The translations under genes and the position numbers were made by a program. A stretch of DNA of 64,000 bases from Lepidodermella squamata. Taxonomy: Eukaryota > Animalia > Gastrotricha. Numbering within the stretch: position 1 is the stretch's first letter; every line of letters begins with the position of its first letter. The DNA is taken from assembly GCA_047495785.1 (NCBI GenBank), contig JBLDXI010000030.1, forward strand, positions 1,178,001 through 1,242,000, read 5' to 3'. The notes beneath the pieces were generated by a model. That model ran no database searches, was not told the origin of the DNA, and was given only the letters and a program-made list of their open reading frames with translations. Shown piece after piece: positions 2,942 through 64,000 of this stretch.

Positions 2942-4105
2942 TTATTCTAGCATCAACGAGAAGAGTATTGTGTCAATGATGATGACGATAATGCTGGCAA
3001 TTGCAGCGATTGCAACGTCCAAAAACCGACGCATCGGCATGTTAATTGACTTATGGAGGTTAACAACGCGGGTTTTCAGCTGCTCAGAAAAGGCTGGAAT
3101 CAAACAAGTATACGCTGTTATTAGCACCGCCACGATGAACTTAGCCGCGACCATGTACACAAGATAGAGATGATCCGAAGTTTTAGGCATCATGCCAAAA
3201 ATCATCGTTAAATATACAACATAGGACAGCACAACGGTCACGCAAAATGCCGATTGATCTCTGTCAACGGGTTCAGCAATCAAAGAAATGACTTGCAGGA
3301 AGAAAAGCATAGAAGTTGGTACGAAGATGTTGCAGACGTAGTAGCTGCTTTTGCGACGAAATCGGATCGTCATTCTCAGGCGGTTGATATGATAAACGCC
3401 ACTCATTTGGCTAGACATGGAAGTGTTGAACTCGAATGGCTCGACAACCGTCCATATATCTGAATCAACAATGAAGGTATCCCGGGCTGATGAGTCAATG
3501 TTGAATGCGTCTATGTTATACACCACGTCGTGGTAGAATTCTGCGGATTCGAAAACCAACGAACAGGATTGGGTGTCGAAGGGGAATTTCCCGTAGCTAA
3601 AAGCGGTGCATGATACGTCGAAACGGTCGTAGATGTCGAAAAACAGCATATCTCGAAATGGAAAGACCCAAACTTGATCGCTGATTTTCCGTGTGAGAGC
3701 AGGAGATCCATAAGCTGTCATATGGCCGATTCCCGGAACCCAAATTTCCGTCGCAGGAACATAGAAGTAGAGTGAATTCTTTCGTGGTATATTGCAGTCC
3801 GATTCGGATAATAAGTCCGTACATTTCGGAGGTGGGCATGGCAGCCTCCAGTCCAGAATGAGATGCCCTACTAGCGATAGTTTCTGCTCAACATCATCAA
3901 TGCCCACAAAGCGTAAGAGGGACATTCTGACATTCACAACAATCGGCTTGCTGTTGTTTGAGCGGACTGCTTGGTCGGTTGGGAGGCATTGTGATCGCAA
4001 GGCTGGGCAGAATTCAGCGTATTTCGTCTGTAAGTTTTCAGCAACTGACCAAGTTGCGTCGGAGGCATTTATAAGCATAGAAATGAGAAATGCTAGCAGA
4101 ATCAT
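2942..4105 (-). CDS. Intronless Cys-loop ligand-gated ion channel subunit, nAChR-like non-alpha, subtype A
   Basis: Signal peptide, IDDVEQKL, IWVP, CTAFSYGKFPFDTQSC loop, pre-M1 RFRRK, four TM helices, MPKTSD M2-M3 linker. Confidence 0.92.
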   Translation of the reverse strand: MILLAFLISMLINASDATWSVAENLQTKYAEFCPALRSQCLPTDQAVRSNNSKPIVVNVRMSLLRFVGIDDVEQKLSLVGHLILDWRLPCPPPKCTDLLSESDCNIPRKNSLYFYVPATEIWVPGIGHMTAYGSPALTRKISDQVWVFPFRDMLFFDIYDRFDVSCTAFSYGKFPFDTQSCSLVFESAEFYHDVVYNIDAFNIDSSARDTFIVDSDIWTVVEPFEFNTSMSSQMSGVYHINRLRMTIRFRRKSSYYVCNIFVPTSMLFFLQVISLIAEPVDRDQSAFCVTVVLSYVVYLTMIFGMMPKTSDHLYLVYMVAAKFIVAVLITAYTCLIPAFSEQLKTRVVNLHKSINMPMRRFLDVAIAAIASIIVIIIDTILFSLMLE

Positions 4106-6282: not shown

Positions 6283-7458
6283 TCAGGCTAGCATCAGAGA
6301 GAAGAGAACTGTATCAACGATCAGCACAGTTAGACTTGCAATAATAGCAACGGCAATATCCAAGAAACGATGAATTGGCATGCTCAAAGATTTGTGCATC
6401 CTAACTAGACAATTAAGTAACTTCAAAACACTAGATTTAAGCCACTCTGGAATACTATGGCTCAAGCAAGTGTACGCCGTAATTATGACTGCAACGATGA
6501 GCTTAGCTGCGATCATGTACACAAGGTAGACATGGTCAGAAGTTTTTGGCATCATGCCGAAAATCAACGTTAGAAATACCACATAGGAAAGCACAACTGT
6601 CACGCAAAATGCTGATTGGTCCCTGTTTATAGGCTCAGCGATCAAAGAAACGACTTGAAGGATGAAAAGTATGATAGTTGGGACGAAAATGCTGCAGACG
6701 TAGTAACCACTTTTGCGCCGAAGTTTAATGGTAAAGTTCACGCGGGAGTACTCTGTTATGTCTGCGCCTTCGAATGTAGAATTACTGAATAGCTCCACTA
6801 ATGACCATATATCAGTATCAACAATGAAGGTATTACCAGAACTCGTGTCGATTTCAAAATATCCAAGACTGAACACCACGTCTCTGATAGGATCGCCTGA
6901 TTCAAGAACTAGCGAACAGGCCTGCGTATCGAATGGGAATTTGCGATAGCTGAAAGTTGTGCAAGATACATCGAATCGGTCAAAAACATAGTACCTCACA
7001 GCATTCTCCTCGGCAAATGGGTGGATCCAGACGAGGTCAGTGAATTTACGACCGATAACAGGATACTCGTATGCAGTCAAATGATTGATTACAGGAATCC
7101 AAATTTCCAGCACAGAGACCGGGAAGTAGAGATCGGCAGGACTTAGTATGTCGCATTCAGTTTGAGATAGTAAATCTGTGCATTTTGGTATCTCGCATGG
7201 CAGCCCCCACCACACGGACAGATAGGCCACCACAGACAATTTCTGCTCCACATCGTCGATGTCTACAAACCGAAGCAGATCCATGTACATGGTCACTATC
7301 ACCGGGCTGGTGTTGTTGGAATAAACCAATTGATCCATCGGTAGGCTTTTCGACTGGACTGCTTCACAATATTCAACGAATCTTTCTTGCAGCTTGCCAG
7401 AAGTCGTCACAGCAGCTACCAGCTTGACAACCACCAGCAAAATTAGATAGGATCTCAT
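6283..7458 (-). CDS. Intronless Cys-loop channel subunit, subtype B
   Basis: Signal peptide, CTTFSYRKFPFDTQAC, ESGD at loop B, four TM helices; complete ORF. Confidence 0.92.
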   Translation of the reverse strand: MRSYLILLVVVKLVAAVTTSGKLQERFVEYCEAVQSKSLPMDQLVYSNNTSPVIVTMYMDLLRFVDIDDVEQKLSVVAYLSVWWGLPCEIPKCTDLLSQTECDILSPADLYFPVSVLEIWIPVINHLTAYEYPVIGRKFTDLVWIHPFAEENAVRYYVFDRFDVSCTTFSYRKFPFDTQACSLVLESGDPIRDVVFSLGYFEIDTSSGNTFIVDTDIWSLVELFSNSTFEGADITEYSRVNFTIKLRRKSGYYVCSIFVPTIILFILQVVSLIAEPINRDQSAFCVTVVLSYVVFLTLIFGMMPKTSDHVYLVYMIAAKLIVAVIITAYTCLSHSIPEWLKSSVLKLLNCLVRMHKSLSMPIHRFLDIAVAIIASLTVLIVDTVLFSLMLA

Positions 7459-10521: not shown

Positions 10522-13500
10522 ATGCAACTTATCGTGTTATTATTGATTTTTTGCTTAATTACATTCCATTGTGATAAGGTAGATACTTGATCTCGGTTCA
10601 AATAATTAAAATTAGCCTTATCTTGAAGTAGCAAAAATTGATTTACGCGTGTTCTCCATCTCCAACATATGTTACCCTATGTTACCTCTTTTCATCGAGA
10701 ACTGCTGAGCTATAAACTGCAAATGAAACTTTCAGAATTGATATTGATACTTACATTTCAGCTGCGAACTTCGTCGATCGTTACTGCTGGCAGATCGATA
10801 GCGCAAGTCTTAGCTGGAAGCGATTACACGGAAGTCGGGTCGAATTTTAATGTTGACGATACAGACTTGCTGCCAGAGCTTGCATCAGGCAGGATAGGAA
10901 CAGTGATCTATAACGTTTGTCAAACAGTATTGATTGATAAATTATTGCAGTCTCAAAGTTGTTCTAGGAATCGATTTACTTGTCATCGCTTTTTTACAAC
11001 GATTCTGGTTACATCAGAAGACTGCCCGTTCCTAACTATGCTGTGTTCAAAGTTGAATCGATCGAAATTGATAATGAATTTGTGAATATTACTGACAGAA
11101 AGTATCGTTTCTACCTAACAATCGGAATTTGGCAAGAGTTGATCACGACCCAGCGAGGTATTAACATCAGCTCATATCACGGCTGCAGCTTCAGGTACAA
11201 GCGAACCTATTTCCATTCTGTTTCGATATCAGCCGGCAACAATTCAATCGGCTCGATCATTCGATTTCATCGGGATAAAGAATACGACGAGCTTCTAAGT
11301 GATGAAGTCCTCCGAGATCGATATCAACAACTCTTTATTGACAAAGAAATCCAGGTGGCCGGCTACAATGCATCGTAAGGAAGTTGAGCCTTGCAATAGG
11401 TTCTTAACGGCTGTAAATATTCTTACTAGATACGTGTACTTGGCGGTGCGGAATCCACTCTTCGGCTACACTCAAGCCATATCGATATATGTCAATAGCA
11501 CATTTGCTCTAACTGGCAAATCTTATTTCGACATTGAGATTACGGCTAGAGTTACGGAAACCTTTGTGGCCATTCAGACCATCGATGTCGATTCAGATGC
11601 AGCTAAGACTGAGTTCACTGAACTGATGAATCCGGTTTTGCAAGCTAATTTGCTGATGATACTTCAAGTTGTCGACTGGGATGACAGGATTATAACTGGC
11701 TACGTCAGAGTGCAAGGTTGGTATAATTTTTAGGGCCAAGCTATTCGCACATAACTATGTACGCGAAAATTGCTTTTCGTACATAGTTTTGCGCGATTTT
11801 TCAGAGTTATTCAAATGGGTGTGGAAATTCGAGATTTGACGATGATACCATGGAATTTCACAGGGAGATGCAGCAAAGTGAGGCCCATCTAGTGCTCAAA
11901 TTTCGTCAGATTATCTTCCAAAGTATTCACGCTAGGGTCGTGAAAAACAATTCAAATAATGCCATTTTGCGAATCTACCTTAGGGGGTCCAATGGTGATT
12001 TTTTGAGGGGAGATAAGCCTGATGGTCAGCTATCAGCACGCAAAAAATTAGATTGATGGGATGAAAATTGAGCAAGTCGTTTATCTTAGAAAAAAGCATA
12101 TCGAAACTATGTACGAATAGCAATTTTCGCGTACATACTATGTACGAATAGACATTCCGTAATTTTTATACGTTCTTTTCCAAACAAATAAATCTTGCTT
12201 TGAACCTTTGATATACCAGGTCCACGCGAAGACGTAATCAACCGAGCCATTCGATCAGCCTACTATCAAGTCTTCAGCCAAATCGATATAAACTTCGTCG
12301 AATCTAAACCTGACTCTACGGGACTATATGACTCATTCCACGGAGCTTCCGCGTGCGGCCTTGGCCGCGGATCTTCGCGGCGTCAATTCGGTGGCCGCCA
12401 AACTGTGAAACAGGAAATATTTCTATTCCAACCTGTTGCGTGGCTGAGGCCTGACTTGGCCGAGCAACTCATGCTGCTCCGCCCTACAACCTTTAACGAA
12501 CAAAATTTGAACCCCTATGAAATAGTGAACAGAGTTGGAGTTTCATCAACATGGTGTCCTCATTGCTCGCAGCAAGGCATCTACAGTGAAGGGTTCTTCA
12601 GTTTTGCCTCTCGCATGTTATACTTCATTAAACGGGGGAAAATGAGCGCCGATGATTTGTGGTCAGCAAATAGGGACTTAAACGAACATCTGGCGGAAGA
12701 GATATCAAAGGATAACGGCAACAATGGGTACATCTCGATCTACGGCGTAACCGGGCCCGATGAACTCCACCATAATCAGTCTGACCATTTGCTAACCAAT
12801 ATTCTCGGACAACTAGGGGTTCACTTTACCCAGTACTTGGCGTGTATTAATAGAGGTGAGATCGATGAGGTCCTGCTGGAAAAATCGATGCGCCTAAAAT
12901 TTCCTTACGACAATGTGACGAAGATCCACTATCAGTTCGATGGGTTCGATTTGAATGATGCGATTTCGCAGGCCGATGTCCTCTTGGCTCATTTTCCAGT
13001 TGGATACAATTTTTCTGGGAAATTTCTTGAACAGGCTCCTCCAGATCTCTTGAGAAACGATATTGACGTAGGTTGCCATCTGATTCAAGGCAAGATATAA
13101 TCGAATATTTTCAGAATTATCATCGCCTCTTCGGCAGAACATTCAGAGCTGGGGTCAAGCAAGTGGAAATTCCTGGCACCTCTTTGGCTGTCAAAGCTAT
13201 ACTTGAGATGCAACTTGCTACGAAAGTTTCAATGGCAGCTGGTCGGAAAGACTTTGAAGATCTGCTAGAAAATTACCATTCTGAGCCATTTTTCATCTGG
13301 AGGAACGTCACTGATGAGGAAAATGCTGCAATTGGCCACACATATACTGCAGCTGCTTTCCTGAATGTCCTCATGTTCGGATTTGCAGGACTGAGAATAA
13401 GACACAATCGGGTCGATATTCTTCAGCCATCGCTACCAGATGGTATCGAGAACCTAGCGCTGTTGGATATCGAACTTTTGGGCTATAATGTCGACTATCA

Positions 13501-13979
13501 TATAAATCGAACTCATATCACCATTCCGTATCTGAACGCGAATTTTAGAAAAATCACGAGCCTATACAGTCGAATTGGGAACCGGTATATCGATCTCGCA
13601 TCCGATAAGATAGAGCTTGAAATTCCTACGGTTGCCGAGACGTCAGACACGACAGCGGCAATCTACTCGTTCACAGCTAGCGATAGCTCCCTATGTCCGC
13701 TGGATGATAGGAACTACAACAGCCACAATCCTTACTACACTCTAGTAGACATTGCTGATGAAAACGAATCGCCAGAAGGCAAGAATATTGAGGCCTAATT
13801 CCCCTTGTTTGATCAAATTGTCAATTTTTACAGATGATAACTTGGTTGTAATTTTATTGTCAACTTTCAGTGCTTTAGTCGTTGTTATAGTAGCGGTTCT
13901 CCTGATCTTGTACATTCGGTCCCGCAAGAATGCTGCAAAAATATCAAACACGTCTCAAGCCAATGGGGATGGAAACTAA
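10522..13979 (+). CDS. Type I membrane protein with a GH65 (PGGHG/ATHL1-like) ectodomain; intact 5' part of a GH65-TM-tyrosine kinase gene (853 aa as modelled)
   Basis: Exons 10522-10578, 10762-10914, 10968-11374, 11430-11716, 12220-13067, 13115-13778, 13834-13979 join in frame (GT-AG, one GC-AG). Signal peptide MQLIVLLLIFCLITF; GH65 motifs RAIRSAYY, HGASACGL, GVTGPDELH, QFDGF..SQADVLL..FP, EPFFIW, FLNVLMFGFAGLRI; TM LVVILLSTFSALVVVIVAVLLILYI then RSRK. Confidence 0.8.
11733..12159. mobile_element. Intronic MITE with 9-bp TSD (Mutator-like)
   Basis: ~55-bp inverted repeats (ctattcgcacataactatgtacgcgaaaattgc / gcaattttcgcgtacatactatgtacgaatag); taattttta duplicated at 11724-11732 and 12160-12168. 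Confidence 0.75.
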
Positions 13980-14380
13980 ACAAACTAGGCTTGAAGTTCG
14001 CCGCCTCCAACATGATATGATTCTGATGCATAAAATGTTTTAGAGATTAGTTGACATTTGTTTCTCTGAGATATTTGAAATCTACCGGAATCCTCGCCTC
14101 TCTGTGAAGATGAGCGCGTGTAGAAATTACCTAAGTTATAAATTCTGCTTCTCTAGGCGTATTCGTGCTGCGTGGAACTGTCTGTCTTCTGTTGTCGTAA
14201 ATAATTATCATCAAGTTTTCTGCAACTATATTAAACATAATTCTGCTCTAATTGATAAACATGTAACATGCGGTGAGGCGCCTCGAAATCACATACTGCT
14301 GATCATTGAAATTTACCATTTGCTAACTGTTCATAACAATTTGCAATAAAATTGAGTAATGAGTAAAGAGAGTAATTAGT
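13979..14380 (+). mobile_element. 5'-truncated CR1/L2-type LINE fragment inserted in the juxtamembrane exon
   Basis: Reads RLEVRRLQHDMILMHKMF and FCFSRRIRAAWNCLSSVVV (CR1 ORF2 C-terminal pattern); AATAAA at 14345-14350; (gagtaa)-type tandem tail; aacta at 13974-13978 and 14381-14385. Confidence 0.8.
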
Positions 14381-15426
14381 AACTACGTTGTGCCTTTTGC
14401 CGATTTTACCAAACTAATCGAAGGAATCGAAGGCGCTCAAGATCTCGTCATTCTCATCGAACGAATCAACGTTTACAATGACTGGCTTGAGATCAAAGGG
14501 ATCCTTGGAGCAGGACATTTTGGCACTGTCCAACACGCCCTACTTCGAATGCCTGATATGGACGAGCAAGAAGTAGCCGTGAAAAGCATCCGCCCTGACC
14601 TGAAGGCAGACGTTGGACTAATCAAAGAAGCCTATGTTATGAAACATTTCAACCACCCTAATGTCTTACCCCTCATTGGAATCGCGATCCTAAACGAGCA
14701 GCCGAATATTATCGTCCCATTCATGCCTAATGGGACGTTGAAAGAGTTTTCGAAACCAAGACTGCTCGACGAGGTGAGTTTCGGCGACAGACTTCGTTTC
14801 TCCACCCAGATATGCGCCGGGATGGTCTATTTACATGACAAGAATTGCATGCATCGAGACCTGGCTTGTTGAAATGTTTTGTTGGACCAAGATTTCACGG
14901 CAAAGATATCTGATTTCGGAATGTCCCGAGTTCTCGAGGATGATGATGACTACTACCGAACAGCGAATGAAAGCGACTATGCCGTCCCAGTTCGTTGGCA
15001 TCCACCTGAATCGCTGATTAGACACGTTTTTACGTGCTAAACAGTGATGTTTGGTCGTTCGGAGTAATCATGTGGGGAATATTCACAAGTAATTATCCTG
15101 TTTTCAGTTTTGATCCTGGTTTTAAAGAGAATTTCTCCCGCAGATTGTGAACACGAACCGTACGAGGAACTTCAAGCTATGGAAGTCATTGTTCACATCT
15201 CACATCAGCCATGGTTATCGTTTATCTAAACCTGCTGCCTGCCCTGATAAATTGTAAGTTACTTTGCATTCTTTAAGGGACAACTTTATTTCGAGATGGT
15301 TTTTTTAGATATGACGATATCATTTCAAAATGCTGGCAGCAAAGCTACGACGAAAGACCCTCGTTTGAGGAGCTTAAAGAAATCCTAGATGAAATGTACA
15401 GTATCGAATTTATTCAAGTATTGTGA
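14381..15426 (+). pseudogene. Disrupted receptor tyrosine kinase domain (MET/RON-like), 3' part of the GH65 gene
   Basis: LGAGHFGTV, VAVKS, HPNVLPLIG, HRDLAC*N, KISDFGMSR, PVRWHPPES, SDVWSFGV, CWQQSYDERPSF; introns 15089-15143 and 15254-15308; nonsense at 14870-14872, frameshift near 15035, 7-bp duplication (tcacatc x2) near 15192-15205. Confidence 0.9.
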
Positions 15427-16482: not shown

Positions 16483-18324
16483 CAGTGCTCCCTCGATAAA
16501 AGCACTGGGTCGGGAGCCAGACCCGGTCTTTAAACAAGGGAAAGCTATAACGAGGGCTGTAATTGCATGCAGACGCTAAAAATAGACCGTTTCTACGTCT
16601 TAAGACAGTTGCCATGCCAACGCGCAGAAAGAGACGGACACGGATTACTTGTCATTACAAATTTCGCTCGCTGAAGACGCTATGAATCATGAGTTCGTCG
16701 CGAAGTTTTTTCTTAGTTGCCAGGGCGGCTTTGATTTGACTGGTTAGCCTTGTTTTTTTTACTCTGATTTCAAGTCCTGCCTGGGGTTAACAAACTCGAA
16801 TGAAAACAAAACCTGGAATCTCATTATTTCAATTTACTTCAAAAATGCCCAGCTCGTCCGATTTCGCAAAAAAAATCATTTGAAATAACAGCTTAAAACA
16901 TCAATCACCTTGGTCAAGATTGACCGGAATACTTCTGAATAAATCACCAGCAAATTTAGCCTAACATTTTCAAGAAAATGCAGTGTTCAATTCAGAACTC
17001 ATGCTTTGCCTAAAATTCGTGGAATTATTGAAATAATTAGAAATAATTAATATGAAATTTGAAACAATTAAGATAAAATATGTATTTTCGATAATTTTTT
17101 CGCGGTTAACCTGACTTTTTCTTTTTAAATTCCTCGAATCAATGGCATTGAGCAATCACGGACCAATTTCAAGGCATAAGACGTGTGGTTCCGTCAAGAG
17201 GGTACGATTCGATAGGTGTTTTGATTGAATGGAATAAATTTGTATCTTCTCAGGTGTGATCTGATTTTCATTCGACTGGCCTATTAAGATCAGAGTAAGG
17301 TAAAAAATCGGGCAGAAGCTCCCGCCGCCCCTGCTCGGGATGTTGCGATTTTCAAAGTCAAAATCGAATGATTAACAGTTGTGAAAAAAACCCGGAAAAT
17401 TGCAATTCCAATGACTCAGGACAACTCGAACGATGACATCGGTTTATTATAAGAATAAATCTATGTATCTAAATTCAATTAAATCTGAAAACAAGGACTT
17501 GATTCTTCGCTTGATTACGCAACACAGCTGGGAAATAATTTTGAAAAAACTGGAAAAAAATTCATCACTTTAGTGTGGAAGATTCAATAATTTTCGACCA
17601 GAAAAACCTGGATTTTACTAGTCGTTTCCCACGGCTCACGGTTTATTCCAGCGGGGTTCTTCCAAAAATGGAGAAATAACTACCGAATCGTTAACAAATA
17701 CCACGAAGTTTCATTTTTCCTGACAAAAGTCACGATTTCTAATCCTAATTCGATCATGTTGGTAAATTTAAAAAGCTTTTGTGGCCGGGAAAACTGCTAA
17801 ATCATGACAAATCAGGGCAATTCAGTGGGTGTTCAATTAATCAGCTATTGATCTCAGAAAAATCTTCAAATCAAGAAGATTGAAGATAGACGGGCATTTT
17901 TATAGTTGTTTAAACGAATTACTAATTGTTTTCTGATGAACTGGCTGATGAATTTCTAATGGAGCTTCAACTCAAAAAGCGGGACGACTCGCAGCACGAC
18001 TTGAGTGGCAGCTAATCCACACATTCTGTTGCGTAATCACAGTCATTTCAAAGCCACAAGAACAGCTTAATGCACTGATGATCTTTCAACTCGTTTGAAC
18101 TAAACTTGAAATAACTGGATCTCTCAAAACCACGACAACGCGCCGCTAGGTTTCTAGGAACGCTTTATTATTTTGAATTTTCACGCTTAATTCATTTAAT
18201 CTATCAAATAATTATTTTTTGTTTAATTAAAAATTTACAACTAATTTATTTGGCAGGGTCCAAAATTACGGTCTACAAACGAGGGAGTTCTTTTAAGGAG
18301 GGTGCCACTAACGAGGGAGCACTG
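16483..18324. mobile_element. Non-autonomous Tc1/mariner-type DNA transposon, TA TSD
   Basis: ta|cagtgctccctcgata...taacgagggagcactg|ta; no intact transposase ORF. Confidence 0.75.
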
Positions 18325-18598
18325 TACTGTGTATTATATTATATTAGTGTTTAGTGTCACACTCGAAGTAGTCAAACATTGGCTCCCACGTGCGAAATGA
18401 ATCATTTCATTTTATTTTGATTGGTGAACTAGCCACTTAGAAAAGGAATGGACAATAATTAATCTGGAATGCTTCAATCATACTTACATCTTACAAGCCA
18501 CTCAACTCTAAGAATACAAATGTTTTTATATACGTTAGTTGATTACACAGATTGTGTTAGTGTTGCATAGGTATAGCATAGGATTCATCGAAAACAGT

Positions 18599-19783
18599 TC
18601 AGGACAGCATTAGGGAAAAGAGAACTGTATCAACAATAAGCACAACCAGGCATGAAACAATAGCAACGGTTATATCCAAAAAACGGAGTATTGGCATGGT
18701 CGAAGATTTGTGTATCCCAACCAGACAGTTTTGCAACATGAAAACACAAGATCTAACTCCCTCAGGGATACTATGGCTCACGCAAGTGTAGGCCGTTATT
18801 ATCACAGCAACGATCAATTTAGCTGCGATCATGTACACAAGGTAGACATGGTCTGAAGTCTTTGGCATCATGCCAAAAATCAACGTGAGAAACACCACAT
18901 AGGAAAGAACAACTGTCACGCAAAACGATGATTGGTCCCTGTTTACAGGCTCAGCGATCAACGAAACGACTTGAAGAATGAAAAGTATGATGGTTGGGAC
19001 GAAAATGTTACAGACGTAGTAGCCACTTTTGCGTCGAAGTTGAATCGTAAAGTTCACGCGGGAGTACTCGGTTATGTCTGCGCCCTCGAATGTAGAATTA
19101 CTGAACAGCTCGACCAGTGACCATATGTCAGAATCGCCGATGAAAGTGTTATCAGCGGTTTCGTCGATGCCGAAGTGACCAAGGCTGAAGACAACGTCTC
19201 TGAGAGGATCGCCTGATTCGAATACAAGCGAGCAAGCTTGCGTATCGAAGGGGAATTTGCGATAGCTGAATGCTGTGCAAGAAACATCAAATCGGTCGAA
19301 TATATAGTACCTCACAGCATTCGACAAGGAAAGCGGATAGACCCAGACCAGGTCAGTAAATTTGTGACCAATAACAGGAGATCCGTAAGCTGTCAAATGA
19401 TAGATTATTGGAGTCCAAATTTCTAACGATGTTACCGGGTAGTTGAGCTTGGTAGGGCTGAGAGTATTGCATTCTGTTTCGGATAGTAAATCTGTACATT
19501 TTGGTGTCTCACATGGCAGGTCCCACTGCGCTGACAGATAAGCTACGAGAGACAGTTTTTGCTCCACGTCGTCGATGTCCACAAACCGGAACAGATTCAT
19601 GGAGATACTTACGATTACCGGACTGGTGTTGTTTGAAAATACCAATTGATCCATCGGTAGGCTTTTCGACAGAATTGCATCACAATATTCAGCGAATTTT
19701 GCCTGTAACTTGACAGAAGTTGTCATGGCAGCTGCCGTTGAAGCCAGCTCAACCACCACCAGCAAAATTAGATGGGATCTCAT
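18599..19783 (-). CDS. Intronless Cys-loop channel subunit, subtype B
   Basis: Close paralogue of 6283-7458 (shared SNSTFEGADITEYSRVNFTI); complete ORF. Confidence 0.92.
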   Translation of the reverse strand: MRSHLILLVVVELASTAAAMTTSVKLQAKFAEYCDAILSKSLPMDQLVFSNNTSPVIVSISMNLFRFVDIDDVEQKLSLVAYLSAQWDLPCETPKCTDLLSETECNTLSPTKLNYPVTSLEIWTPIIYHLTAYGSPVIGHKFTDLVWVYPLSLSNAVRYYIFDRFDVSCTAFSYRKFPFDTQACSLVFESGDPLRDVVFSLGHFGIDETADNTFIGDSDIWSLVELFSNSTFEGADITEYSRVNFTIQLRRKSGYYVCNIFVPTIILFILQVVSLIAEPVNRDQSSFCVTVVLSYVVFLTLIFGMMPKTSDHVYLVYMIAAKLIVAVIITAYTCVSHSIPEGVRSCVFMLQNCLVGIHKSSTMPILRFLDITVAIVSCLVVLIVDTVLFSLMLS

Positions 19784-20647
19784 GATTATTTGACGATATT
19801 AGCATGCGATTTACATGGGCGTGCAAATCCGAAATAATTATCTTGCTAGAAGTTGTATGCAAATACATTAAGCTCATCGACCTTGGCCCAATACACATTT
19901 CCTGTGAAGCATTTGTTTGAACAGGGATCATATTGGCATTGATTAGTATTATTTAAAAACGAGTAAACCTTGTTCACAATGGTCTTCATGGTGATGTTGT
20001 GGAAAATACTGGTTTATTGAAACAAGGCTTCGATCTAGGATCCAGTAACTTCTACGGATAAAATTGTTTGCTCTACAAATGGTTGCTCTACTAATGCACG
20101 CTTTGTCTTTTCAGTTATTATCTTTACAATGCATTGAGGACATGACGCTATCAGCAGAAAATGCTGAGAAGTTCATAATACCACCATTAGGGTCCATTGG
20201 ATTCTGCGTATAAATATGAATTATTTCGAAGACAAATAACAAATTCAGGGTTAGAAATTTTATTAATCAAAGTTTCACCAGTTTTTGATTAATGCGTTTG
20301 TCGCAATTGAAATACGCCAAAAGTAAATTTTGAAAAATTACTAGTTATGTAGCAATATAAATATCTCAAGAAATTTCAGGTAAACTATAAACGATGCTGT
20401 CACGGGGTTTACAAAATTATGACATGTCAAACAATTGAGTCATCGGCCTTTACTGAGGGCTCGTTTTTCAAATGTGCTGAACTGCGAGCTCCCTTCTCTT
20501 GCGTTAAATAGCTTTAAAATTCGCTTTTGCTAATTTCACGAATTTTAATGCGAAAATGAATAATCTTTTTATAGTGTCATAATGTCAAGGAGTGAGGCTT
20601 GAGGGTAGCAGCAATTTATCTGATGGTAACAATTTTTTCTTTCGAAG

Positions 20648-21817
20648 TCATTCCAACATCAACGAGAACAGTATTGCGTCAATCAGGATGACGACGAGGC
20701 TGCCACTTGCGGCGATTGCGACGTCCAAATATCGAAGCATCGAAATTTTCAAAGACTTATTCAGCTGAATTACGCGCGTTTTCAGCTGCTCAGAATAAGC
20801 TGGAATCAAGCAGGTATATGCTGTTATTAGCACCGCCACTATGAACTTGGTCGCGACCATGTAGACAAGGTAGACGTGATCTGACGTTTTTGGCATCATG
20901 CCAAAAATCATCGTCAAATATACAACATAGGACAGAACAACAGTCACGCAAAATGCCGATTGGTCCCTGTTCACAGGCTCAGCAATCAAAGAAATAACTT
21001 GGAGAAAGAAAAGCATAGAGGTTGGGACAAAGATGTTGCAGACGTAGTAGCCACTTTTGCGGCGAAATCGGATCGTCATTGTCAAATAGCTGACGTGATA
21101 GGCGCCATCTAACTGATTAGAAATAGAGGTATTGAACTTAAGTGGCTCGACAACTGTCCAAATATCAGAATCAACGATGAAGGTATCACGGGCTGATGAG
21201 TCTATGTTGAATGATTCAATCTGATAAGCCACGTCTTTGTAGTACTCGAAGGACTCGAATACTATGGAACATGACTGAGTGTCGAATGGGAATTTTCGGT
21301 AGCTGAATGTCGTGCAGGATATATCAAATACTTCGTAGACGTCGAATATTACTAAATTCGAATGAAATGGGTAAACCCAAACTTGGTCACTGATTCTCCT
21401 GGTAAGAACAGGCGATTCGTAAGCTGTCATATGGGCAATTCCTGGTAACCAAATTTCCGTCGCAGGAACAAAGAAATACAGGTTATCCTTTCGCGGTATG
21501 TTGCATTCCGCATCCGATAGTAGATCCGTACATTTCGGAGTTGGGCATGGCAGCCTCCAGAGCATATATAGATGTGCGAGAAGCGATAGTTTTTGCTCTA
21601 CATCATTGATGCCTACAAATCGGATGAGAGACATGGTGAGATTCACGGTAACTGGACTGCTGTTATTCGAATATATTGCTTGGTCGGTTTGTAGGCACTT
21701 TGACCGCAAGGCTGGGCAGAACTCAGCATATTTCGCCTCTAAATTTTCTGCGTAAGATAAAGATGCGGCAAGCGGTTCAATTTGCATGAATATCAAGGCG
21801 AATATTAGCCGAGTCAT
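20648..21817 (-). CDS. Intronless Cys-loop channel subunit, subtype A
   Basis: EFCPALRSKCL N-terminus, CTTFSYRKFPFDTQSC, four TM helices; complete ORF. Confidence 0.92.
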   Translation of the reverse strand: MTRLIFALIFMQIEPLAASLSYAENLEAKYAEFCPALRSKCLQTDQAIYSNNSSPVTVNLTMSLIRFVGINDVEQKLSLLAHLYMLWRLPCPTPKCTDLLSDAECNIPRKDNLYFFVPATEIWLPGIAHMTAYESPVLTRRISDQVWVYPFHSNLVIFDVYEVFDISCTTFSYRKFPFDTQSCSIVFESFEYYKDVAYQIESFNIDSSARDTFIVDSDIWTVVEPLKFNTSISNQLDGAYHVSYLTMTIRFRRKSGYYVCNIFVPTSMLFFLQVISLIAEPVNRDQSAFCVTVVLSYVVYLTMIFGMMPKTSDHVYLVYMVATKFIVAVLITAYTCLIPAYSEQLKTRVIQLNKSLKISMLRYLDVAIAASGSLVVILIDAILFSLMLE

Positions 21818-22367: not shown

Positions 22368-25087
22368 TCATGATAACATCAGTGAGAAAAGAACTGCGTC
22401 GATAATCAATACAATCAGACCGGCTGCTATAGCAACGGCCAGGTCCAAAAAACGCTGCATTGGTAAGGCCATACATTTGTGTAACTTGAGGACGCGGGAT
22501 TTTAGTGACTCGGGGATATTAAAGCAAGTATATCCCGTAATAAGGACAGCAACGATGAATTTAGCCGCGATCATATACACAAGGTAGACATGATCTGAAG
22601 TTTTTGGCATCATGCCAAAAATCAAGGTGAGAAATACTATGTAAGATAGAACGACAGTCACACAAAACGCTGATTGATCCCTGTTCACAGGTTCAGCGAT
22701 CAAAGAAATGACTTGAAGGATGAAAAGTGTGATAGTAGGCACAAAGATGTTGCAAACGTAGTAGCCACTTTTGCGGCGAAATTGAATTGTCAAGATCACA
22801 CTGGAATAGTCAGTCCTGTCGTTGTTCGGTATTGTTGCATTGCCGCTATACCCGACGACTGACCATATGTCAGAATCAACGATGAAGGTGTTTTCATCGG
22901 AGCTATCAATTCCAAATGATCCTAAACGGAACACCACGTCTCTTGAAAGATCGCCGGATTCGAATACCAGTGAGCACGTTTGCGTATCGAACGGGAATTT
23001 GCTGTAGCTGAAAGCGGTGCAGGATACATCGAATCGATCGTAAGCATAGTAGCTCACTTCTTTCGACTTGATAAATGGATAAATCCAGGCCAGGTCGTTG
23101 AACTTGCGGCCGATAACGGGAAACTCGTAAGCAGTCAAATGATGAATTTTAGGTGTCCATATTTCTAACGTTTGAACCGGGTAGTTGAGCTCAAAAGGCC
23201 TAAGTATTTTACATTCTGTTTCTGATAGTAAATCTGTGCATTTCGGTTTTTCGCAGTGGTCCGACTTGAACTGATCGGGAGGGGGGTGTGAAAACATCTG
23301 ATTAAAAAATTGCGCTCGCGAACGCTGCGCGTTCGCTCGCATCCATTACACGTTTCTATTGCCTTTATAAGCTTTCAGGCACTTTTCATACGGGGCCCTT
23401 CCCGCCACGAGACAACACAAAACATACTTATGCGTACGTTTTCAAAATTAAATGTGCATACATTTTCGTGTTTCGCATCGCCATACGAAGACAACATTTT
23501 ACATTGAAGAGTTTCATAATATGCGAGCGAAGCGAGCTCAAAATATAGTTTTAATGCTGAATTATCATAAGGGGATAGTGTAAAAATTGATTCAAATCAA
23601 ATAAAGCTTTTATAACTTCGAGCTTGAAAATGAGAGCTATTTTATGTGATTGAAACGGACTAATCTTCCCGGGGTTTATCGAACCAAAAATATTCATAAT
23701 TACTTCGGAAAATCGCATAAGCAAATGCACTGTTTACTCCATTGTCAACAATCAATGGATTTCTAGAAATAATCGGGGCAGCCAGAAAACAATGCGAGCG
23801 TAGCGAGCCGAAAATTTCAAAATTTATGAGATATTTCATTTGTTGGTTATTTTGGTGGATGGCGACCTTTATAAATTTGCATCAGCACCTGCGATTTCTG
23901 TTAGCCTTTTAAAACCCATAAATACATTTGTTTTAGACGAACTGAATGTCCCTTTCATGCAAGCGGCCCGTGTGCCCACGCGTTAAAACGGCCCTGCTGC
24001 CACTGGAATGTAACCGTGCAATTTATATTGATAACTCAAAACCAGTGTGTGCTACCTCCAATATGACTTCGGATTCGGATTCGGCGTGAAATTCTGGATA
24101 GAAATATATGTGACACGACCTGTCCAACGTAAAAATTGACCACGTGACAGTAAAGCAATAAATTTATTACACCCCCTAATTATCTCCTGATCTATGATGA
24201 CTGCGAAAATTCTGAAAAAAGAAACGGATTCAGCGTACGAAATTTACCCCTCCGGGGTTTCTAAGGGGGTTTTCGTCAAAAAAGAACACATTTTTCAACT
24301 TTTTTTTAAAAAAATTAATTTTTGTGAAAATATGACGGTCGATTTCAATCACATGAAAATTTAGTTTTTTTTTCATTTTGTGTTTTTATGATCGCGATAC
24401 ATGTTTCTAGGGTAACTTTTTACGAGGAATTCAATGGCGCAGTCCATTTTTCGATATTGATTTTTCCTGTATCGATTTTTGACCATCGATTTATTGATTA
24501 TTGGCTGATCGATCGATTTTAGACTTTTTACCCCCTTCCAGTGTTAGTAGATTTATGCTGGAAGGGCACGACTTTGTTTAACTACACGTTACAGGTAAAT
24601 TTCATGTTTTTATACCAATCTATATATCTTCCAGTCATATTGGCTTCAACACTTTCTTGAACCATTTTTCCGCCTCCAGGGGGGTAAGCTCACCCCCCTC
24701 AACCGTCAGCCGCCTGTGCTAGGGGTGGGCATTTTCCCCCCTTCCCCCCCGGAGTCGGAACACTGGTTTTTCGCATGGCAGCCCCCACCGCATGGACAAA
24801 TGCGCCAATAATGATAGTTTTTGCTCCACATCGTCGATTCCCATAAAACGGAGGAGATCCATTCGGATTGTCACGATAACCGGACTGATATAAATTATAC
24901 TATTAATACTAATATTAATAATACTAATACTGGTATTGGAATAAACCAATTGATCCATCGGTAGGCTTTTTGACGTAACTGCCCGACACCATTCAGTGAA
25001 TTTTGCCTGCAGCTTCTCAGAAGTTTGCACCGTAACTTTCGTCGAAGCGAGCCTACCCACCACCAGCAAAACTAGAAGCGATTTCAT
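22368..25087 (-). pseudogene. Cys-loop subunit, subtype B, split by a hAT element
   Basis: 25087-24766 gives signal peptide to WGLPCEK; 23245-22368 continues PKCTDLLSE to the stop; removing 23254-24765 plus one TSD restores the frame. Confidence 0.88.
23254..24765. mobile_element. Non-autonomous hAT-superfamily element
   Basis: TIR cagtggtccgact / agtcggaacactg; 8-bp TSD gtttttcg at 23246-23253 and 24766-24773; internal gcgagcgaagcgagc motifs. Confidence 0.9.
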
Positions 25088-25901: not shown

Positions 25902-27074
25902 TCATTCTAGCATCAACGAGAAGAGTATTGTGTCAATGACGATGACGATAATGCTAGCCATTGCAGCGATAGCGACATCCAAAAACCGACGCATTGACAT
26001 GATTATGGACTTTTGCAGATTAACAACGCGCGTTTTAAGCTGCTCAGAATAGCCGGGAATCAAGCAGGTATACGCTGTTATTAGCACCGCCACGATGAAT
26101 TTAGCTGCGACCATGTAGACAAGATAGAGATGATCTGAGGTTTTTGGCATCATGCCAAAAATCATCGTCAAATATACAACATAGGACAGCACAACAGTCA
26201 CGCAAAATGCCGATTGATCTCTGTTCACGGGTTCAACAATTAACGAAATGACCTGAAGGAAGAAAAGCATAGATGTTGGGACGAAGATGTTGCACACGTA
26301 GTAGCCACTTTTGCGCCGAAATCGAATTGTCATTCTCAGGCGGTTGATAGGATAAGCACCACTCATTTGGCTAGACATTGATGTATTGAACTCGAGTGGC
26401 TCAACAACTGACCATATATCAGTGTCAACGATGAAGGTGTCCCTGGCTGACGAGTCAATATTGAATGCGTTCATTTGATAAACAACATCGTAGTAAAATT
26501 CGGATGATTCGAATACCAGCGAGCATGACTGAGAATCGAAAGGAAATTTTCGGTAACTAAATGTGGTGCATGATACGTCGAAGCGGTCGTAGATATCGAA
26601 AAACAGTGTGGTATTTGGTTTAAAAGGGAAGACCCAAACTTGATCACTGATTTTCCGTGTGAAAACTGGCGTTTCGTAAGCTGTCATATGGCCGATTCCT
26701 GGTACCCAAATTTCCGACGCAGGAACGTAGAAGTACAGGTAATTCTTTCGTGGTAATTCGCAGTCCGATTCGGATAATAAGTCCGTACATTTCGGAATCG
26801 GGCATGGCAGCCTCCAGGCCATAGTAAGATGACCGACAAGCGATAGTTTCTGTTCAACATCATCGATGCCCACAAAGCGTAGGAGGGACATTGTGACATC
26901 CACGACAACTGGCTGGGTGTTTTTTGAGCGGACTGCTTGATCGCTTGGGAGGCACTTCGATCGCAAGGCCGGGCAGAACTTGGCATACTCTGCCTCAAGG
27001 TTCTCAGCAACTGACCAAGCTGCGTCGGAAGCATTTATCAGCTTAAACGAGAGAAGAAATGCAAGCAGAATCAT
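25902..27074 (-). CDS. Intronless Cys-loop channel subunit, subtype A
   Basis: Closest paralogue of 2942-4105 (MILLAFL.., NTSMSSQMSG); complete ORF. Confidence 0.92.
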   Translation of the reverse strand: MILLAFLLSFKLINASDAAWSVAENLEAEYAKFCPALRSKCLPSDQAVRSKNTQPVVVDVTMSLLRFVGIDDVEQKLSLVGHLTMAWRLPCPIPKCTDLLSESDCELPRKNYLYFYVPASEIWVPGIGHMTAYETPVFTRKISDQVWVFPFKPNTTLFFDIYDRFDVSCTTFSYRKFPFDSQSCSLVFESSEFYYDVVYQMNAFNIDSSARDTFIVDTDIWSVVEPLEFNTSMSSQMSGAYPINRLRMTIRFRRKSGYYVCNIFVPTSMLFFLQVISLIVEPVNRDQSAFCVTVVLSYVVYLTMIFGMMPKTSDHLYLVYMVAAKFIVAVLITAYTCLIPGYSEQLKTRVVNLQKSIIMSMRRFLDVAIAAMASIIVIVIDTILFSLMLE

Positions 27075-28080
27075 ACTGCTGAGCTTTCAACCTAATTCCT
27101 ACCTGTGAGCTCGAAACGGTTTGGCGAGTAATTTCAGGTTGAACTAAAAATTGGACAACCACGGCAGTTACATTTCCTGTTAAACATTGGTTTATTATCA
27201 ATAAAAGTGTATTATGCTTTCTCTTAACCAATTATAAGGAAACGCTTACCTGAACAAATAGCGCGAGATCAATTTTTTCGCGAAATGCAGCATATCGATT
27301 GACCAAAAAAGAAATAGGCATTTCATTTATATTAGGATACTGAAAGTTTGAACGCCGAAAATGGCTAAATAAGCTTGGCTGCCATTCAAAATATGAAGCT
27401 CGACGCAAAGAAATGAATAAGAGTGACAAATTGCTGATTTTAGCCAGTAGCAGAATGAGTTTTTATCAGTTATTTGGAATACAGGGAACAGTTTTCAGCT
27501 CCTTTAAATAATTGAGTTAGCAGACACCTTCTATAATTGCCAGCCGTTGATCGCACGCCAATAGGCAATAGCTCTGAAAAAACAGTCGAGAGTCCTCTTT
27601 CGAGCGAATGTAGCCTCGAATCGATGAAATGACAGGCGTATTTTAAAAAGAACCTGATGGCTTAATACTCGAAATTATAGTTTTACGATGATCTGGGCTG
27701 GTATCATAGCTTGCAACTAAATTTAGAAAAAAATAAAAAATTATTCGATAACGATCCGTAACATTAGCCAACTTGAGCTACTGAGAAGTGTAACAAAATC
27801 AGTGTCTCTAACGACTGGCATCGCATGCACTGATTAGCTTGTATCCACTGTTAGAGTTAATTTTAGCATGCTGCAGCACATTCCACAGGGCGGAGCAACA
27901 TCTCGGGAAGGTTACACTGCTTTAGTCATACTAAAATCGGTTATGATACGTGACAAAAGCAATTTTCTGTATGCAAAAAATGTAAGCTCGAAATTAGCTT
28001 CGTCACGCCTACATTGCATAAACGTTGACTTGTTAGTCCCAATAGTTAGTAGTTTCTATTCCTCGGCATCACAAACTTCA

Positions 28081-30405
28081 ATGGAAAAGGCAATATTCGT
28101 GATTTTGTTGATTCTCAGCACTTCCGTTGCATCGGAAGTTACGATTCAAGTTCCGGTATTCTTGCCATTCACTGGTCTCCTGCCAAACCAATACAGAACA
28201 TGCCGAGCTGTAACTGAGCTGGTTTTCAACAAGTTCAATGAAGACCCAACTCTCCTACCTGGCTATCGAGTTGAACCCGAGTTCATGGACGACAACAACG
28301 GCCCGTTGTTGGTTCAACGATTGCTCGAATTCGATTCTCGATCCAAACTTGACAACAGTTCGAAAATTCGAGCACCAATAATCTTAGGTCCGATCAATAA
28401 CTGCCATCTGACAGCTAGTTTCGCTCATATGCTTGGGTATATTCAAATCGCCCAATGCCCCGGCGATATCTTGATGAACAAGATTTTGTACCCAAATCTG
28501 TTCCTAATTCGTCCGGTTGGCTATCATTCGTGGAATATTAGGATTCGTTTCATGCTAGATATCGGAAACTGGCGACGTGTTGGCCTAATCGCTAGCTCCC
28601 ACATTCAAGATACATCCAACGCTCGTTTGTTCAACGATCTCGCCCTTAGAGTTGGGATGCAAGTCTATATTGATATAGTAACGGATTTCACAGATGAAGC
28701 AACTCTAGCCCTTCAACAATCCGATGTTAGGATCATCGTTTTCGCTGTTACGGCAGTCAATGCCCTGAGCTATAGGATTCTATGCCAATGCTTCAAATTC
28801 GGCATAACTGGACCTAGGTATGTTTTCATTCTTCCTGGGAGTGTTTTCGCAGATCCGAAAACTCTGCCGAATGAAACTTACCCTGGTTGTACGAGAGAAA
28901 TTATCGCAACTCAATACAAATTCGCATTCATGGCCTCAAGCCAGCTCAGCTCGGAAGATACGGTAGGGAAGAGCCAATTGGGTTACTCTCTAACAGAATT
29001 CGATAGAATGTTGGACAACTACACCGGCTCGCTGCGTCATCCTGATTATTCAAGCCGATTTTTCTGTCATGATGCAGCTCTTCAAGGTCTTCTCATTCTC
29101 GACGAAGGTCAGAAGGTTCTGAGTAAGCAAGGCCTGAGCCTTTCAAACATCTCGACTCATTCGATCGAAATATCAAACGTGATGAATGAAACAGGTATGA
29201 AGCTGAGATTTGCCGGTCTGAAGAGTGAGGGCCTTACTACGTACAACGATCGGGGAGAGGTAACAGGAAGCAAGTGGCCGATATCTCAATGGACCCCAGC
29301 TGGTGGCCTGAAGATTGTCTATCACATAACGAAGGCTCCAAATGACAGCAAAACCGACGCCAGCTCATACAGATCTTTACCTGTTTCAAAAATTGAATGG
29401 TACACAGCTTTCGGGAAGCCAATCAAGGACAGAGCGACATACGTAAAGATCAACGAAGATGTACCTATTGAGGCTAGAATTTTAATCTGGATTTTAGCTT
29501 TGATTTCTTTCACGGCTAAAGTTTTAGCTTTAATTAAGGTGTTGGTGAAAATCGGACTGAAACTGCCTGTTTTAATCCAGATTATTAGCTTCTGTTTATT
29601 GGACCCTAGTGCTGTTCTATTCATGATCGAAGTTGAGCTGGATAATATGGTTAGCCTTTTCAAGGCCCGTGTTGCCCTCCTTGCATTGGGGATTTCGCTT
29701 TCAAACGCAGCGATGTCTCTTTTAGCCTTGTTCACGACATCCGCAATTAGATCACGTACAAAACCGTCGAGGCTTAATTTACTTGCGAAAACAGCGTCTA
29801 ATCCGGTGAGTGTAACGCCAACGGAGAAATTCCATACGCGAAAATATATATTGGCGCTGATGATTTTCGGCTGCGTGGTAGTTACTTACGTGACTGTCTG
29901 GACCACGATCGAGCCAGCGATGTGTTACCGCCAGTTGAAATTTGATACGGCCTATTACGATGAGATTGAAGACATGATAACCGAGGTTCTTGGCGTCGCG
30001 TGTCAGTCACGTAACGAAATCGCGTGGATCTTTGCGCTGCTCAGCGTCAACGCCGCAATTTTATTAGCCGGCGCGACATCGGCTCGCCAACACGTTAGGA
30101 CTCTACGACTAACGGAGAAGTATCATCAGTTCAATATGCTGCTCTATGCTATGGTGAACGGACTGATTTTGATGCTTGCAACTTGCCTAGTTGTACTCAT
30201 CGTTCCGCAGTACCCTATTCCTCAGCGTATTGTGATGGCGATATCAGCTTTGTTTTATTCAGCTATTTCAAGTGTCATGTGTCTGGGTCCAGTTTTGCGG
30301 AAACCAGTGCAGATATTTCCAGTGCCGGAACTAAAGCATCCCCGGCCGTCAGTTGAACTCAAACTCAATGGGTTGACGTTAGGACCAACAATTTTACCAC
30401 GCTAG
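28081..30405 (+). CDS. Intronless class C GPCR, GABA-B-like architecture (VFT + 7TM, no cysteine-rich domain)
   Basis: Signal peptide from MEKAIFVILL (preferred over ATG 27868); LLPGY, IILGP, YPNLF, WRRVGLI, CQCFKFGITGPRYVFI, HDA; seven hydrophobic segments; C-x-S in ECL2. Confidence 0.88.
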   Translation: MEKAIFVILLILSTSVASEVTIQVPVFLPFTGLLPNQYRTCRAVTELVFNKFNEDPTLLPGYRVEPEFMDDNNGPLLVQRLLEFDSRSKLDNSSKIRAPIILGPINNCHLTASFAHMLGYIQIAQCPGDILMNKILYPNLFLIRPVGYHSWNIRIRFMLDIGNWRRVGLIASSHIQDTSNARLFNDLALRVGMQVYIDIVTDFTDEATLALQQSDVRIIVFAVTAVNALSYRILCQCFKFGITGPRYVFILPGSVFADPKTLPNETYPGCTREIIATQYKFAFMASSQLSSEDTVGKSQLGYSLTEFDRMLDNYTGSLRHPDYSSRFFCHDAALQGLLILDEGQKVLSKQGLSLSNISTHSIEISNVMNETGMKLRFAGLKSEGLTTYNDRGEVTGSKWPISQWTPAGGLKIVYHITKAPNDSKTDASSYRSLPVSKIEWYTAFGKPIKDRATYVKINEDVPIEARILIWILALISFTAKVLALIKVLVKIGLKLPVLIQIISFCLLDPSAVLFMIEVELDNMVSLFKARVALLALGISLSNAAMSLLALFTTSAIRSRTKPSRLNLLAKTASNPVSVTPTEKFHTRKYILALMIFGCVVVTYVTVWTTIEPAMCYRQLKFDTAYYDEIEDMITEVLGVACQSRNEIAWIFALLSVNAAILLAGATSARQHVRTLRLTEKYHQFNMLLYAMVNGLILMLATCLVVLIVPQYPIPQRIVMAISALFYSAISSVMCLGPVLRKPVQIFPVPELKHPRPSVELKLNGLTLGPTILPR

Positions 30406-32287: not shown

Positions 32288-32498
32288 ATTGCTGAACTTC
32301 ATTTCAAATCCTACATTTAAGAACCATAAACGGTTTCCGATGTATTTCAGGTGGAAGCATGAAAAATTACATTTGGATGACTTCAGTGGATACATTTCCT
32401 ATAAAAAGTTCAGATCAATAAGGGAAACAATTACTTAAACAAATAGGGTGAGGTCGATATTTTACCGCGGCAGGACGATTAAACAAACAGCTAGCTTT

Positions 32499-63986: not shown

Positions 63987-64000
63987 GAAAATCAAAACTT

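Follow-up and report, generated by a model that had tools for sequence, protein, structure and literature searches.

The alpha- and beta-Klotho proteins carry dead glycosidase ectodomains of the glycoside hydrolase family 1 (GH1) fold that serve as ligand-binding receptors feeding the receptor tyrosine kinase (RTK) FGFR, the signalling receptors RPTP gamma and RPTP zeta use a dead carbonic-anhydrase domain as ligand-binding ectodomain, and CHRK1 of tobacco is a plant receptor-like kinase with an ectodomain of the carbohydrate-active enzyme (CAZyme) type. The nearest published concept to the gene described here is that of the chlorophyte receptor-like kinases with glycosyl-hydrolase moieties (PMC12757656). 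Here, we analyse a gene at 10522-15426 on the + strand of a 64-kb stretch of DNA from Lepidodermella squamata (64,000 nucleotides of assembly GCA_047495785.1, contig JBLDXI010000030.1, positions 1,178,001 to 1,242,000; in the following, the window), in which the body of a GH65 glycosidase is joined to a transmembrane (TM) helix and a tyrosine kinase. Combining the gene model with profile and structure comparisons and with contigs of a public run, we consider it likely that this locus represents a disabled gene from a lineage-specific type-I RTK family in which the whole ectodomain is a PGGHG-type GH65 pseudo-enzyme.

Catalysis in GH65 hydrolases involves a general acid Glu (E472 in the enzyme FjGH65A) and a general base Glu (E616), the latter of which is completely conserved among these hydrolases, and the FjGH65A E616Q mutant has less than 0.1% activity left; similarly, the four subsite -1 residues that form hydrogen bonds with glucose (Trp, Asp, Lys and Gln) are completely conserved in GH65 hydrolases (PMC8626586). 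The PDB titles of mutants of human PGGHG name E430 and E574, the equivalents of E472 and E616 of FjGH65A.

Results

A nine-exon gene with the layout of a type-I receptor

The window is animal DNA with a GC content of ~41%, and the receptor gene lies on the + strand between two channel genes. It consists of nine exons (10522-15426, +), the introns of which are of the GT-AG type except for one GC-AG intron. The exons and the two elements that interrupt the gene are:

10522..10578, + strand: exon 1, ATG and signal peptide with the hydrophobic core LIVLLLIFCLI; donor GTAGAT, phase 0.
10762..10914, + strand: exon 2, beginning of the GH65 N-terminal beta-sandwich (..LASGRIGTVIYN).
10968..11374, + strand: exon 3, GH65 N-terminal domain.
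11430..11716, + strand: exon 4, end of the N-terminal domain, followed by a helical linker.
11745..12156, unstranded: element resembling a miniature inverted-repeat transposable element (MITE) or foldback element, in intron 4, with terminal inverted repeats of 34 nt that are 97% complementary.
12220..13067, + strand: exon 5, initial two thirds of the (alpha/alpha)6 barrel with most catalytic and subsite positions.
13115..13778, + strand: exon 6, remainder of the barrel and C-terminal beta domain; CPL..NYNSHN kept; GC donor GCAAGA.
13834..13978, + strand: first part of exon 7 (exon 7a), TM helix (13842-13916), RSRK as stop-transfer signal, then 23 juxtamembrane residues.
13979..14385, + strand: insertion of 407 bp that interrupts exon 7, made up of a 402-bp element and the second AACTA copy.
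14386..15088, + strand: second part of exon 7, juxtamembrane region, then the kinase from its N-lobe up to and including the activation loop.
15144..15253, + strand: exon 8, kinase C-lobe (..EPYEEL.., GYRLSKPAACP).
15309..15426, + strand: exon 9, last part of the kinase domain (CW..RPSF; Pfam PK_Tyr_Ser-Thr positions 235-258), short tail and TGA at 15424-15426.

Exon 7 spans 13834-15088 with the insertion included. Exons 1 to 7a form a stop-free frame of 853 codons that encodes the signal peptide, an ectodomain of ~790 residues, a TM helix of 25 residues, RSRK and a short juxtamembrane stretch, and the type-I topology (signal peptide, ectodomain, one TM helix) was read straight off this translation. 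Between the ectodomain and the end of the kinase the frame is interrupted by the insertion, which creates a TAA, by a TGA and by two frameshifts. A preliminary description of this DNA, made from its letters, had nine exons joining in frame: the exons and their splice sites are real and the 853-codon frame runs to exon 7a, but the kinase part contains the TGA and the two frameshifts. The layout that it proposed, i.e. signal peptide, full GH65 fold, one TM helix and Tyr kinase, is seen in the translation and in the profile and Pfam matches.

Of the eight introns, six have lengths of 47-55 nt and intron 1 has 183 nt. Intron 4 (11717-12219) measures 503 nt instead of ~90 nt because the ~410-bp foldback-like element sits within it, and in both X1 and X2, the public runs, no other part of the region reaches the repeat depth of this element. 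For intron 6, a search of all in-frame GT/GC-AG combinations identified the GC donor as the sole junction that retains the C-terminal motif, with an intron of 55 nt; a GT donor at 13694 was rejected because it loses CPL..NYNSHN, which is common to the relative P0001 (see below), and makes an intron of 139 nt. An Rfam scan of the window gave no match.

The ectodomain is a complete GH65 module

The ectodomain is a complete PGGHG-type GH65 module. Compared to a local profile built from 20 canonical animal GH65 homologues (722 positions), the spliced ectodomain scores 207 bits in a single stretch from profile position 36 to 686; 50 shuffled control sequences gave no score against this profile. The N-terminal 330 residues alone reach 46 bits (E 1e-10) and the C-terminal 160 residues alone 37 bits, and the ectodomain is collinear with animal GH65 across the N-terminal beta-sandwich, the linker, the (alpha/alpha)6 barrel and the C-terminal beta domain.

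With exon 5 as query, 99 homologues were identified in a search of 1.84 billion representative proteins, and Glyco_hydro_65m was detected in each of the ten homologues scanned (nine at 1e-45 to 1e-60, P0001 at 5e-12). In phmmer searches of the PDB, human PGGHG (9sd4-9sd8) is the top match to exon 5 (E 7e-12) with maltose phosphorylase far lower, and exon 6 returned nothing even with E values up to 1. The AlphaFold model of exon 5 has a predicted local distance difference test (pLDDT) score of 83 and a predicted template modelling score (pTM) of 0.83, and the structure closest to it is human PGGHG (TM-score 0.78). The model of P0001 (pTM 0.85) matches PGGHG with TM-scores of 0.69/0.79 across 762 columns and, in the ESM Atlas, matches arthropod and chordate PGGHG-like clusters. 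Structure and profile comparisons, i.e. the exon 5 model and the 207-bit profile match, thus agree with the GH65 identity given in the preliminary description.

Loss of catalytic and glucose-binding residues

In the alignment, the general acid is retained as Glu483 in GPDELH (12762-12764, exon 5) and the general base position is occupied by Asn648 (13304-13306, exon 6), giving WRN where the canonical sequence is WTE. At subsite -1, Trp-Asp is replaced by Val364-Lys365 (12405-12410, exon 5) and Lys-Gln reads Ser551-Gln552 (12966-12971, exon 5), leaving Gln552 as the only one of the four residues that is kept; exon 5 also holds Tyr401-Glu402. The His of the GH.FWD motif is an Arg, the NF.TG.GG loop is replaced, and 37 of the 85 columns that are conserved to at least 90% in the canonical set are kept.

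Because the general base is lost along with three of the four residues at subsite -1, the ectodomain is, on the evidence of this alignment, a predicted pseudo-enzyme. Binding of a canonical glucoside appears unlikely, since Trp, Asp and Lys of subsite -1 are replaced and the general base is Asn, and a role of the ectodomain in binding of a ligand is plausible. The idea that the receptor senses collagen glycosides or alpha-glucosides, put forward in the preliminary description, finds no support in a site with Asn648 as base and with only Gln552 left of the four.

An insertion separates the membrane anchor from the kinase

The insertion is bordered by a target-site duplication of AACTA (13974-78 and 14381-85). 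After ..ANGDGN the frame meets a TAA (13977-13979), a stop that is created by the insertion and lies 23 codons beyond the membrane anchor (TM helix and RSRK). Excision of the insertion in silico gives ..GDGN-Y-VVPFADF.. in frame, and once the insertion is out, a single exon carries the TM helix and juxtamembrane stretch through to the in-frame kinase N-lobe. Three contigs in X1 skip exactly 13973->14381 (407 bp, with five letters shared); therefore, uninterrupted TM-kinase exons exist, either as paralogues or as alleles. Two statements of the preliminary description, that removal of the insert and one aacta copy yields a continuous junction and that ectodomain and kinase were once one gene, are supported by the in-frame junction inside one exon and by the empty site in the three X1 contigs. 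The possibility that the insertion is an intron was rejected, as the skipped stretch starts with AA and ends with GT.

The 3' end of the insertion is retroposon-like, with AATAAA at ~14344 followed by a degenerate tail of the TGAGTA type, and another copy of this repeat in X1 continues into (ATGAGT)n. X1 depth is 498-1441 over 14079-14334 compared to ~40-60 per contig over unique exons. The 81-aa open reading frame (ORF) of the insertion has no match to reverse transcriptase (RT), endonuclease or any other Pfam family, a second copy was not found in the 64-kb window, and a sequence look-up of the insertion was also blank. Based on the target-site duplication, the degenerate TGAGTA-like tail and the high repeat depth in X1, the insertion is likely a retroposon. 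Its earlier label as a fragment of a long interspersed nuclear element (LINE) is not borne out, there being neither an RT or other Pfam match nor a second copy in the window, and it could just as well be a short interspersed nuclear element (SINE) or a fragment of a 3' untranslated region.

The kinase domain and its lesions

The kinase matches Pfam PK_Tyr_Ser-Thr at 1e-28 in the N-lobe, and its pieces together span profile positions 2-258. The motifs GAGHFG, VAVK, DFG, DDYY and PVRW are present and the HRDLAARN motif reads HRDLAC*N; the activation loop contains tandem tyrosines, and the tyrosine-kinase signature PVRW..PES is present. Single-domain matches of the N-lobe to the PDB, ranked by match score, are led by MET (70 bits), followed by MER (64 bits), TYRO3 and RON, and the kinase can therefore still be called MET-like in the sense that MET is the closest solved kinase.

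The kinase part carries three lesions in addition to the insertion: (i) an in-frame TGA at 14870-14872, inside HRDLA(C)*N, (ii) a +2 frameshift in a TTTTT run at 15027-15031, and (iii) a 7-bp sequence, TCACATC, that is perfectly duplicated in tandem at 15193-15206 and so shifts the frame ahead of GYRLSKP. A related contig in X1 is two letters shorter at 15029, which gives ..HVYVLNSDVWSFGV, and ~350 of 463 of the X1 depth at this position agrees with the window sequence. The kinase of the window copy is dead.

A multi-copy family and a relative lacking the kinase

That the family is multi-copy is shown by 455 X1 contigs that align at 85-100% likeness. With all pieces of the gene as queries, tblastn found no paralogue inside the 64-kb window. 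The second run, X2, which is RNA only by guess and has a depth of 2-10, contains pieces identical to several of the ectodomain exons.

P0001 is a protein of 796 aa from a metagenomic eukaryote, encoded at locus L001 of ENA ERZ23486764, a 41-kb eukaryote-like contig. Over exon 5 its identity to the window protein is 36%, the whole ectodomain matches the L001 locus with an E value of 2e-80 (tblastn), and the upstream exon of L001 ends at the same intron position as exon 2 (..IGTxIYN followed by GT). P0001 shares the derived motifs of the window protein (WRN, LGRG, QE[IL][FY]LF, an 8-residue insert with LEQA.PD, and CPL..NYNSHN) and likewise ends in a C-terminal hydrophobic anchor or tail; the two differ in that the general acid is Lys in P0001 and in that P0001 keeps the Asp that the window copy has lost. 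A protein homologue search with P0001 retrieved only P0001 itself and one weak GH65, and a metagenome scan with the exon 5-P0001 alignment gave 251 pattern matches, 0 of which were confirmed. Given that P0001 combines the derived motifs and a hydrophobic tail with the lack of a kinase, a non-catalytic, membrane-tethered GH65 subfamily is therefore predicted to exist independently of the fusion to a kinase. This subfamily, which had previously gone unnoticed, would be recognisable by WRN instead of WTE and is found in at least two eukaryotes, both fused to a kinase and free of one.

The L001 contig, with a GC content of 37% and short introns, is dense with ankyrin-repeat genes and also carries ELO and SSF transporter genes (1-2335 and 17597-21636). 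Seven other homologues (P0004, P0007, P0010, P0022, P0030, P0041 and P0060) are canonical invertebrate PGGHG-like proteins with the catalytic residues kept and a hydrophobic C-terminal tail, and membrane or glycosylphosphatidylinositol (GPI) tethering of GH65 enzymes seems, from such sequences, to be common outside vertebrates. P0003 (1314 aa) is a tandem double GH65 with a peptidoglycan-recognition-like stretch between the copies and has no kinase.

Neighbouring genes

The receptor gene sits inside an array of Cys-loop channel genes and on the strand opposite to them. Neighbours of the ion-channel gene in the ESM Atlas are variously molluscan, nematode and arthropod. The other features of the window are:

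2942-4105, 6283-7458, 18599-19783, 20648-21817, 22368-23342, 25902-27074, 31118-32395 and 33385-33900, - strand: ~8 intronless Cys-loop channel-like genes, ~390 aa, divergent (Neur_chan_LBD 1e-8).
27868-30405, 43889-46249, 51492-53769, 56697-57836 (- strand) and 58939-61188: cluster of genes resembling class-C G protein-coupled receptors (GPCRs), with ANF_receptor and 7tm_3.
37644-38432, - strand: intronless methyltransferase gene of the NNMT/PNMT/TEMT family (1.7e-46).
41261-41773, - strand: exon with a nuclear-receptor C4 zinc finger (1.4e-10).
63285-63995, - strand: ORF with a long Thr/Ser/Pro-rich, mucin-like N-terminus and no Pfam match.

The nuclear-receptor zinc finger and the Cys-loop channels mark the genome as metazoan. 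The class-C GPCR-like genes are large and mostly single-exon, and several of them are apparently split or truncated. In the ORF at 63285-63995, the mucin-like part is followed by the apparent start of another Cys-loop ligand-binding domain.

Discussion

Proposed function of intact paralogues and probable fate of the window copy

We suggest that in intact paralogues the dead GH65 body would function as a scaffold for binding of a ligand, which is probably not a canonical alpha-glucoside, that two MET-like kinase domains would meet upon ligand binding or dimerisation, and that the tandem activation-loop tyrosines would then be phosphorylated by the paired kinases. In this model, the product of the window copy, if any, would be a membrane-tethered ectodomain without kinase. 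The window locus documents turnover in this family by means of an insertion, a nonsense codon and frameshifts, together with a possible kinase-less derivative.

Several observations weigh against an RTK family with a GH65 ectodomain. Exon 5 alone scores 19.7 bits with Pfam Glyco_hydro_65m compared to a gathering cut-off of 27, the domain being split over two exons; thus, of the two Pfam families named in the preliminary description, PK_Tyr_Ser-Thr was matched and Glyco_hydro_65m stayed below threshold on this exon. No kinase was found by tblastn within 10 kb of P0001 on L001, and the fusion has so far been seen in one genome only. The evidence for intact paralogues is indirect, consisting of the X1 contigs, and X2 (RNA by guess) shows a single contig that apparently joins 13770->13832, with intron 6 out, and no GH65-TM-kinase message.

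If ectodomain and kinase had never been one gene, a membrane-anchored GH65-like gene would lie upstream of an unrelated, 5'-truncated kinase pseudogene, in line with P0001, which stops just past its hydrophobic tail and has no kinase nearby, and with the frame in the window, which likewise stops soon after the TM helix. However, excision of the 407-bp insert between its target-site duplications gives a perfect in-frame junction within one exon, this junction is uninterrupted in three X1 contigs, and no separate start codon, signal or exon boundary exists for the kinase part, so that we regard a pair of unrelated neighbours as highly improbable. It is even harder to believe that the lesions are sequencing errors in the assembly and that the gene is actually intact: one of the frameshifts does fall in a homopolymer (TTTTT, 15027-31), but a 407-bp insertion with target-site duplication, a nonsense codon of the C-to-T type and a 7-bp tandem duplication are atypical of read errors, and most of the X1 depth at 15029 (~350/463) is the same as the window. 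Similarly, we consider it very unlikely that the ectodomain is still an active membrane alpha-glucosidase or a true sensor of glucosides or collagen glycosides. Glu483, Gln552, Glu402 and the TN motif are kept and the overall fold is, in the models, preserved; but the base is Asn in place of a Glu that is completely conserved in GH65 hydrolases and the exchange of which for Gln leaves FjGH65A with <0.1% activity (PMC8626586), Trp, Asp and Lys of subsite -1 are replaced, and only 37 of 85 highly conserved columns are retained.

The alternative that deserves most attention concerns the window copy rather than the family, i.e. that the kinase was lost to the insertion and that the gene survives as a retained truncated receptor, a tethered dead-GH65 decoy or co-receptor with a P0001-like architecture. 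The 2561-nt frame for ectodomain and TM helix contains 0 lesions compared to three in the 931-nt kinase, a distribution with a probability of (931/3492)^3 = 0.019 if lesions fell uniformly; every splice site and the signal peptide are intact, P0001 represents a natural kinase-less tethered form, and an AATAAA lies within the insertion. As all three lesions are in the kinase and none is in the ectodomain or TM helix, the sequence hints that the ectodomain may have remained under constraint. On the other hand, this statistic rests on three events, nearby paralogues could have kept the ectodomain clean through gene conversion, the donor of intron 6 is GC, the expression data are unusable (X2 is shallow and RNA by guess), and the differences from related X1 contigs are too few (six synonymous and eight non-synonymous in the ectodomain, 2/6 in the kinase). 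We therefore see a retained truncated receptor as a possible but doubtful outcome, and a decaying pseudogene as the more likely state of the window copy. The more specific scenario, that a retroposon turned an RTK into a tethered dead-GH65 protein that selection has kept as a decoy or co-receptor for intact paralogues, is unlikely in our view; if true, the insertion would have re-created the ancestral-like architecture of the distant relative P0001, and the family would provide a natural case of receptors that switch between versions of a pseudo-enzyme ectodomain that signal and versions that do not.

Comparison with known receptors

The GH65-TM-tyrosine kinase architecture, which we favor as the origin of the window locus, is real at the level of genomic continuity and apparently undescribed. 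In agreement with the preliminary description, which knew of no RTK class with a GH65 ectodomain, a GH65-kinase fusion is present in none of the 99 homologues retrieved from the 1.84 billion representatives, among which the sole protein longer than 860 aa is the tandem GH65; the ESM Atlas neighbours, by features and by shape, are GH65 families only and include no kinase fusion; and a literature search returned no paper that relevantly links receptor tyrosine kinase to GH65 or Glyco_hydro_65. In a 2024 review of GH65 the word kinase is absent. RTKs are defined largely by their ectodomains, and a complete GH65 glycosidase body has not previously been described as one.

Human PGGHG/ATHL1 (9sd4-9sd8) is the best match in sequence and structure, has the same four-region GH65 layout, and its E430 has an equivalent in the acid kept in the window protein. 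PGGHG is a soluble enzyme, whereas the window protein has a signal peptide and continues from its GH65 module into a TM helix and a kinase. In addition, the equivalent of E574 is Asn, that of D301 is Lys, the Trp and Lys of subsite -1 are lost, and the window protein has an 8-residue insert after the KQAD region. The kinase is like that of MET/RON by score, but the Sema-PSI-IPT ectodomain of these receptors is missing from the window gene, where GH65 covers the ectodomain end to end; similarly, the N-lobe is like that of AXL/MER/TYRO3, the Ig-FN3 ectodomain of which is absent.

Among receptors with enzyme-derived ectodomains, RPTP gamma and zeta would be alike in having a pseudo-enzyme ectodomain and differ in its fold and in the cytoplasmic enzyme. 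CHRK1 and the chlorophyte receptor-like kinases resemble the window gene in that a single TM helix links a glycosidase-like ectodomain to a cytoplasmic kinase; however, they are Ser/Thr kinases (RLK/Pelle) with other GH families in plants and algae, whereas the window gene combines an animal tyrosine kinase with GH65. Klotho has a GH1 fold and acts as a co-receptor in trans, whereas in the family described here the predicted GH65 pseudo-glycosidase and the kinase form a fusion in cis. To our knowledge, Klotho and CHRK1 may by analogy be regarded as the closest functional analogues. If intact paralogues are expressed, they would constitute an animal counterpart of the plant chitinase-like receptor kinases, a cis-fused analogue of Klotho-FGFR and a new case of a pseudo-enzyme recruited for ligand recognition.

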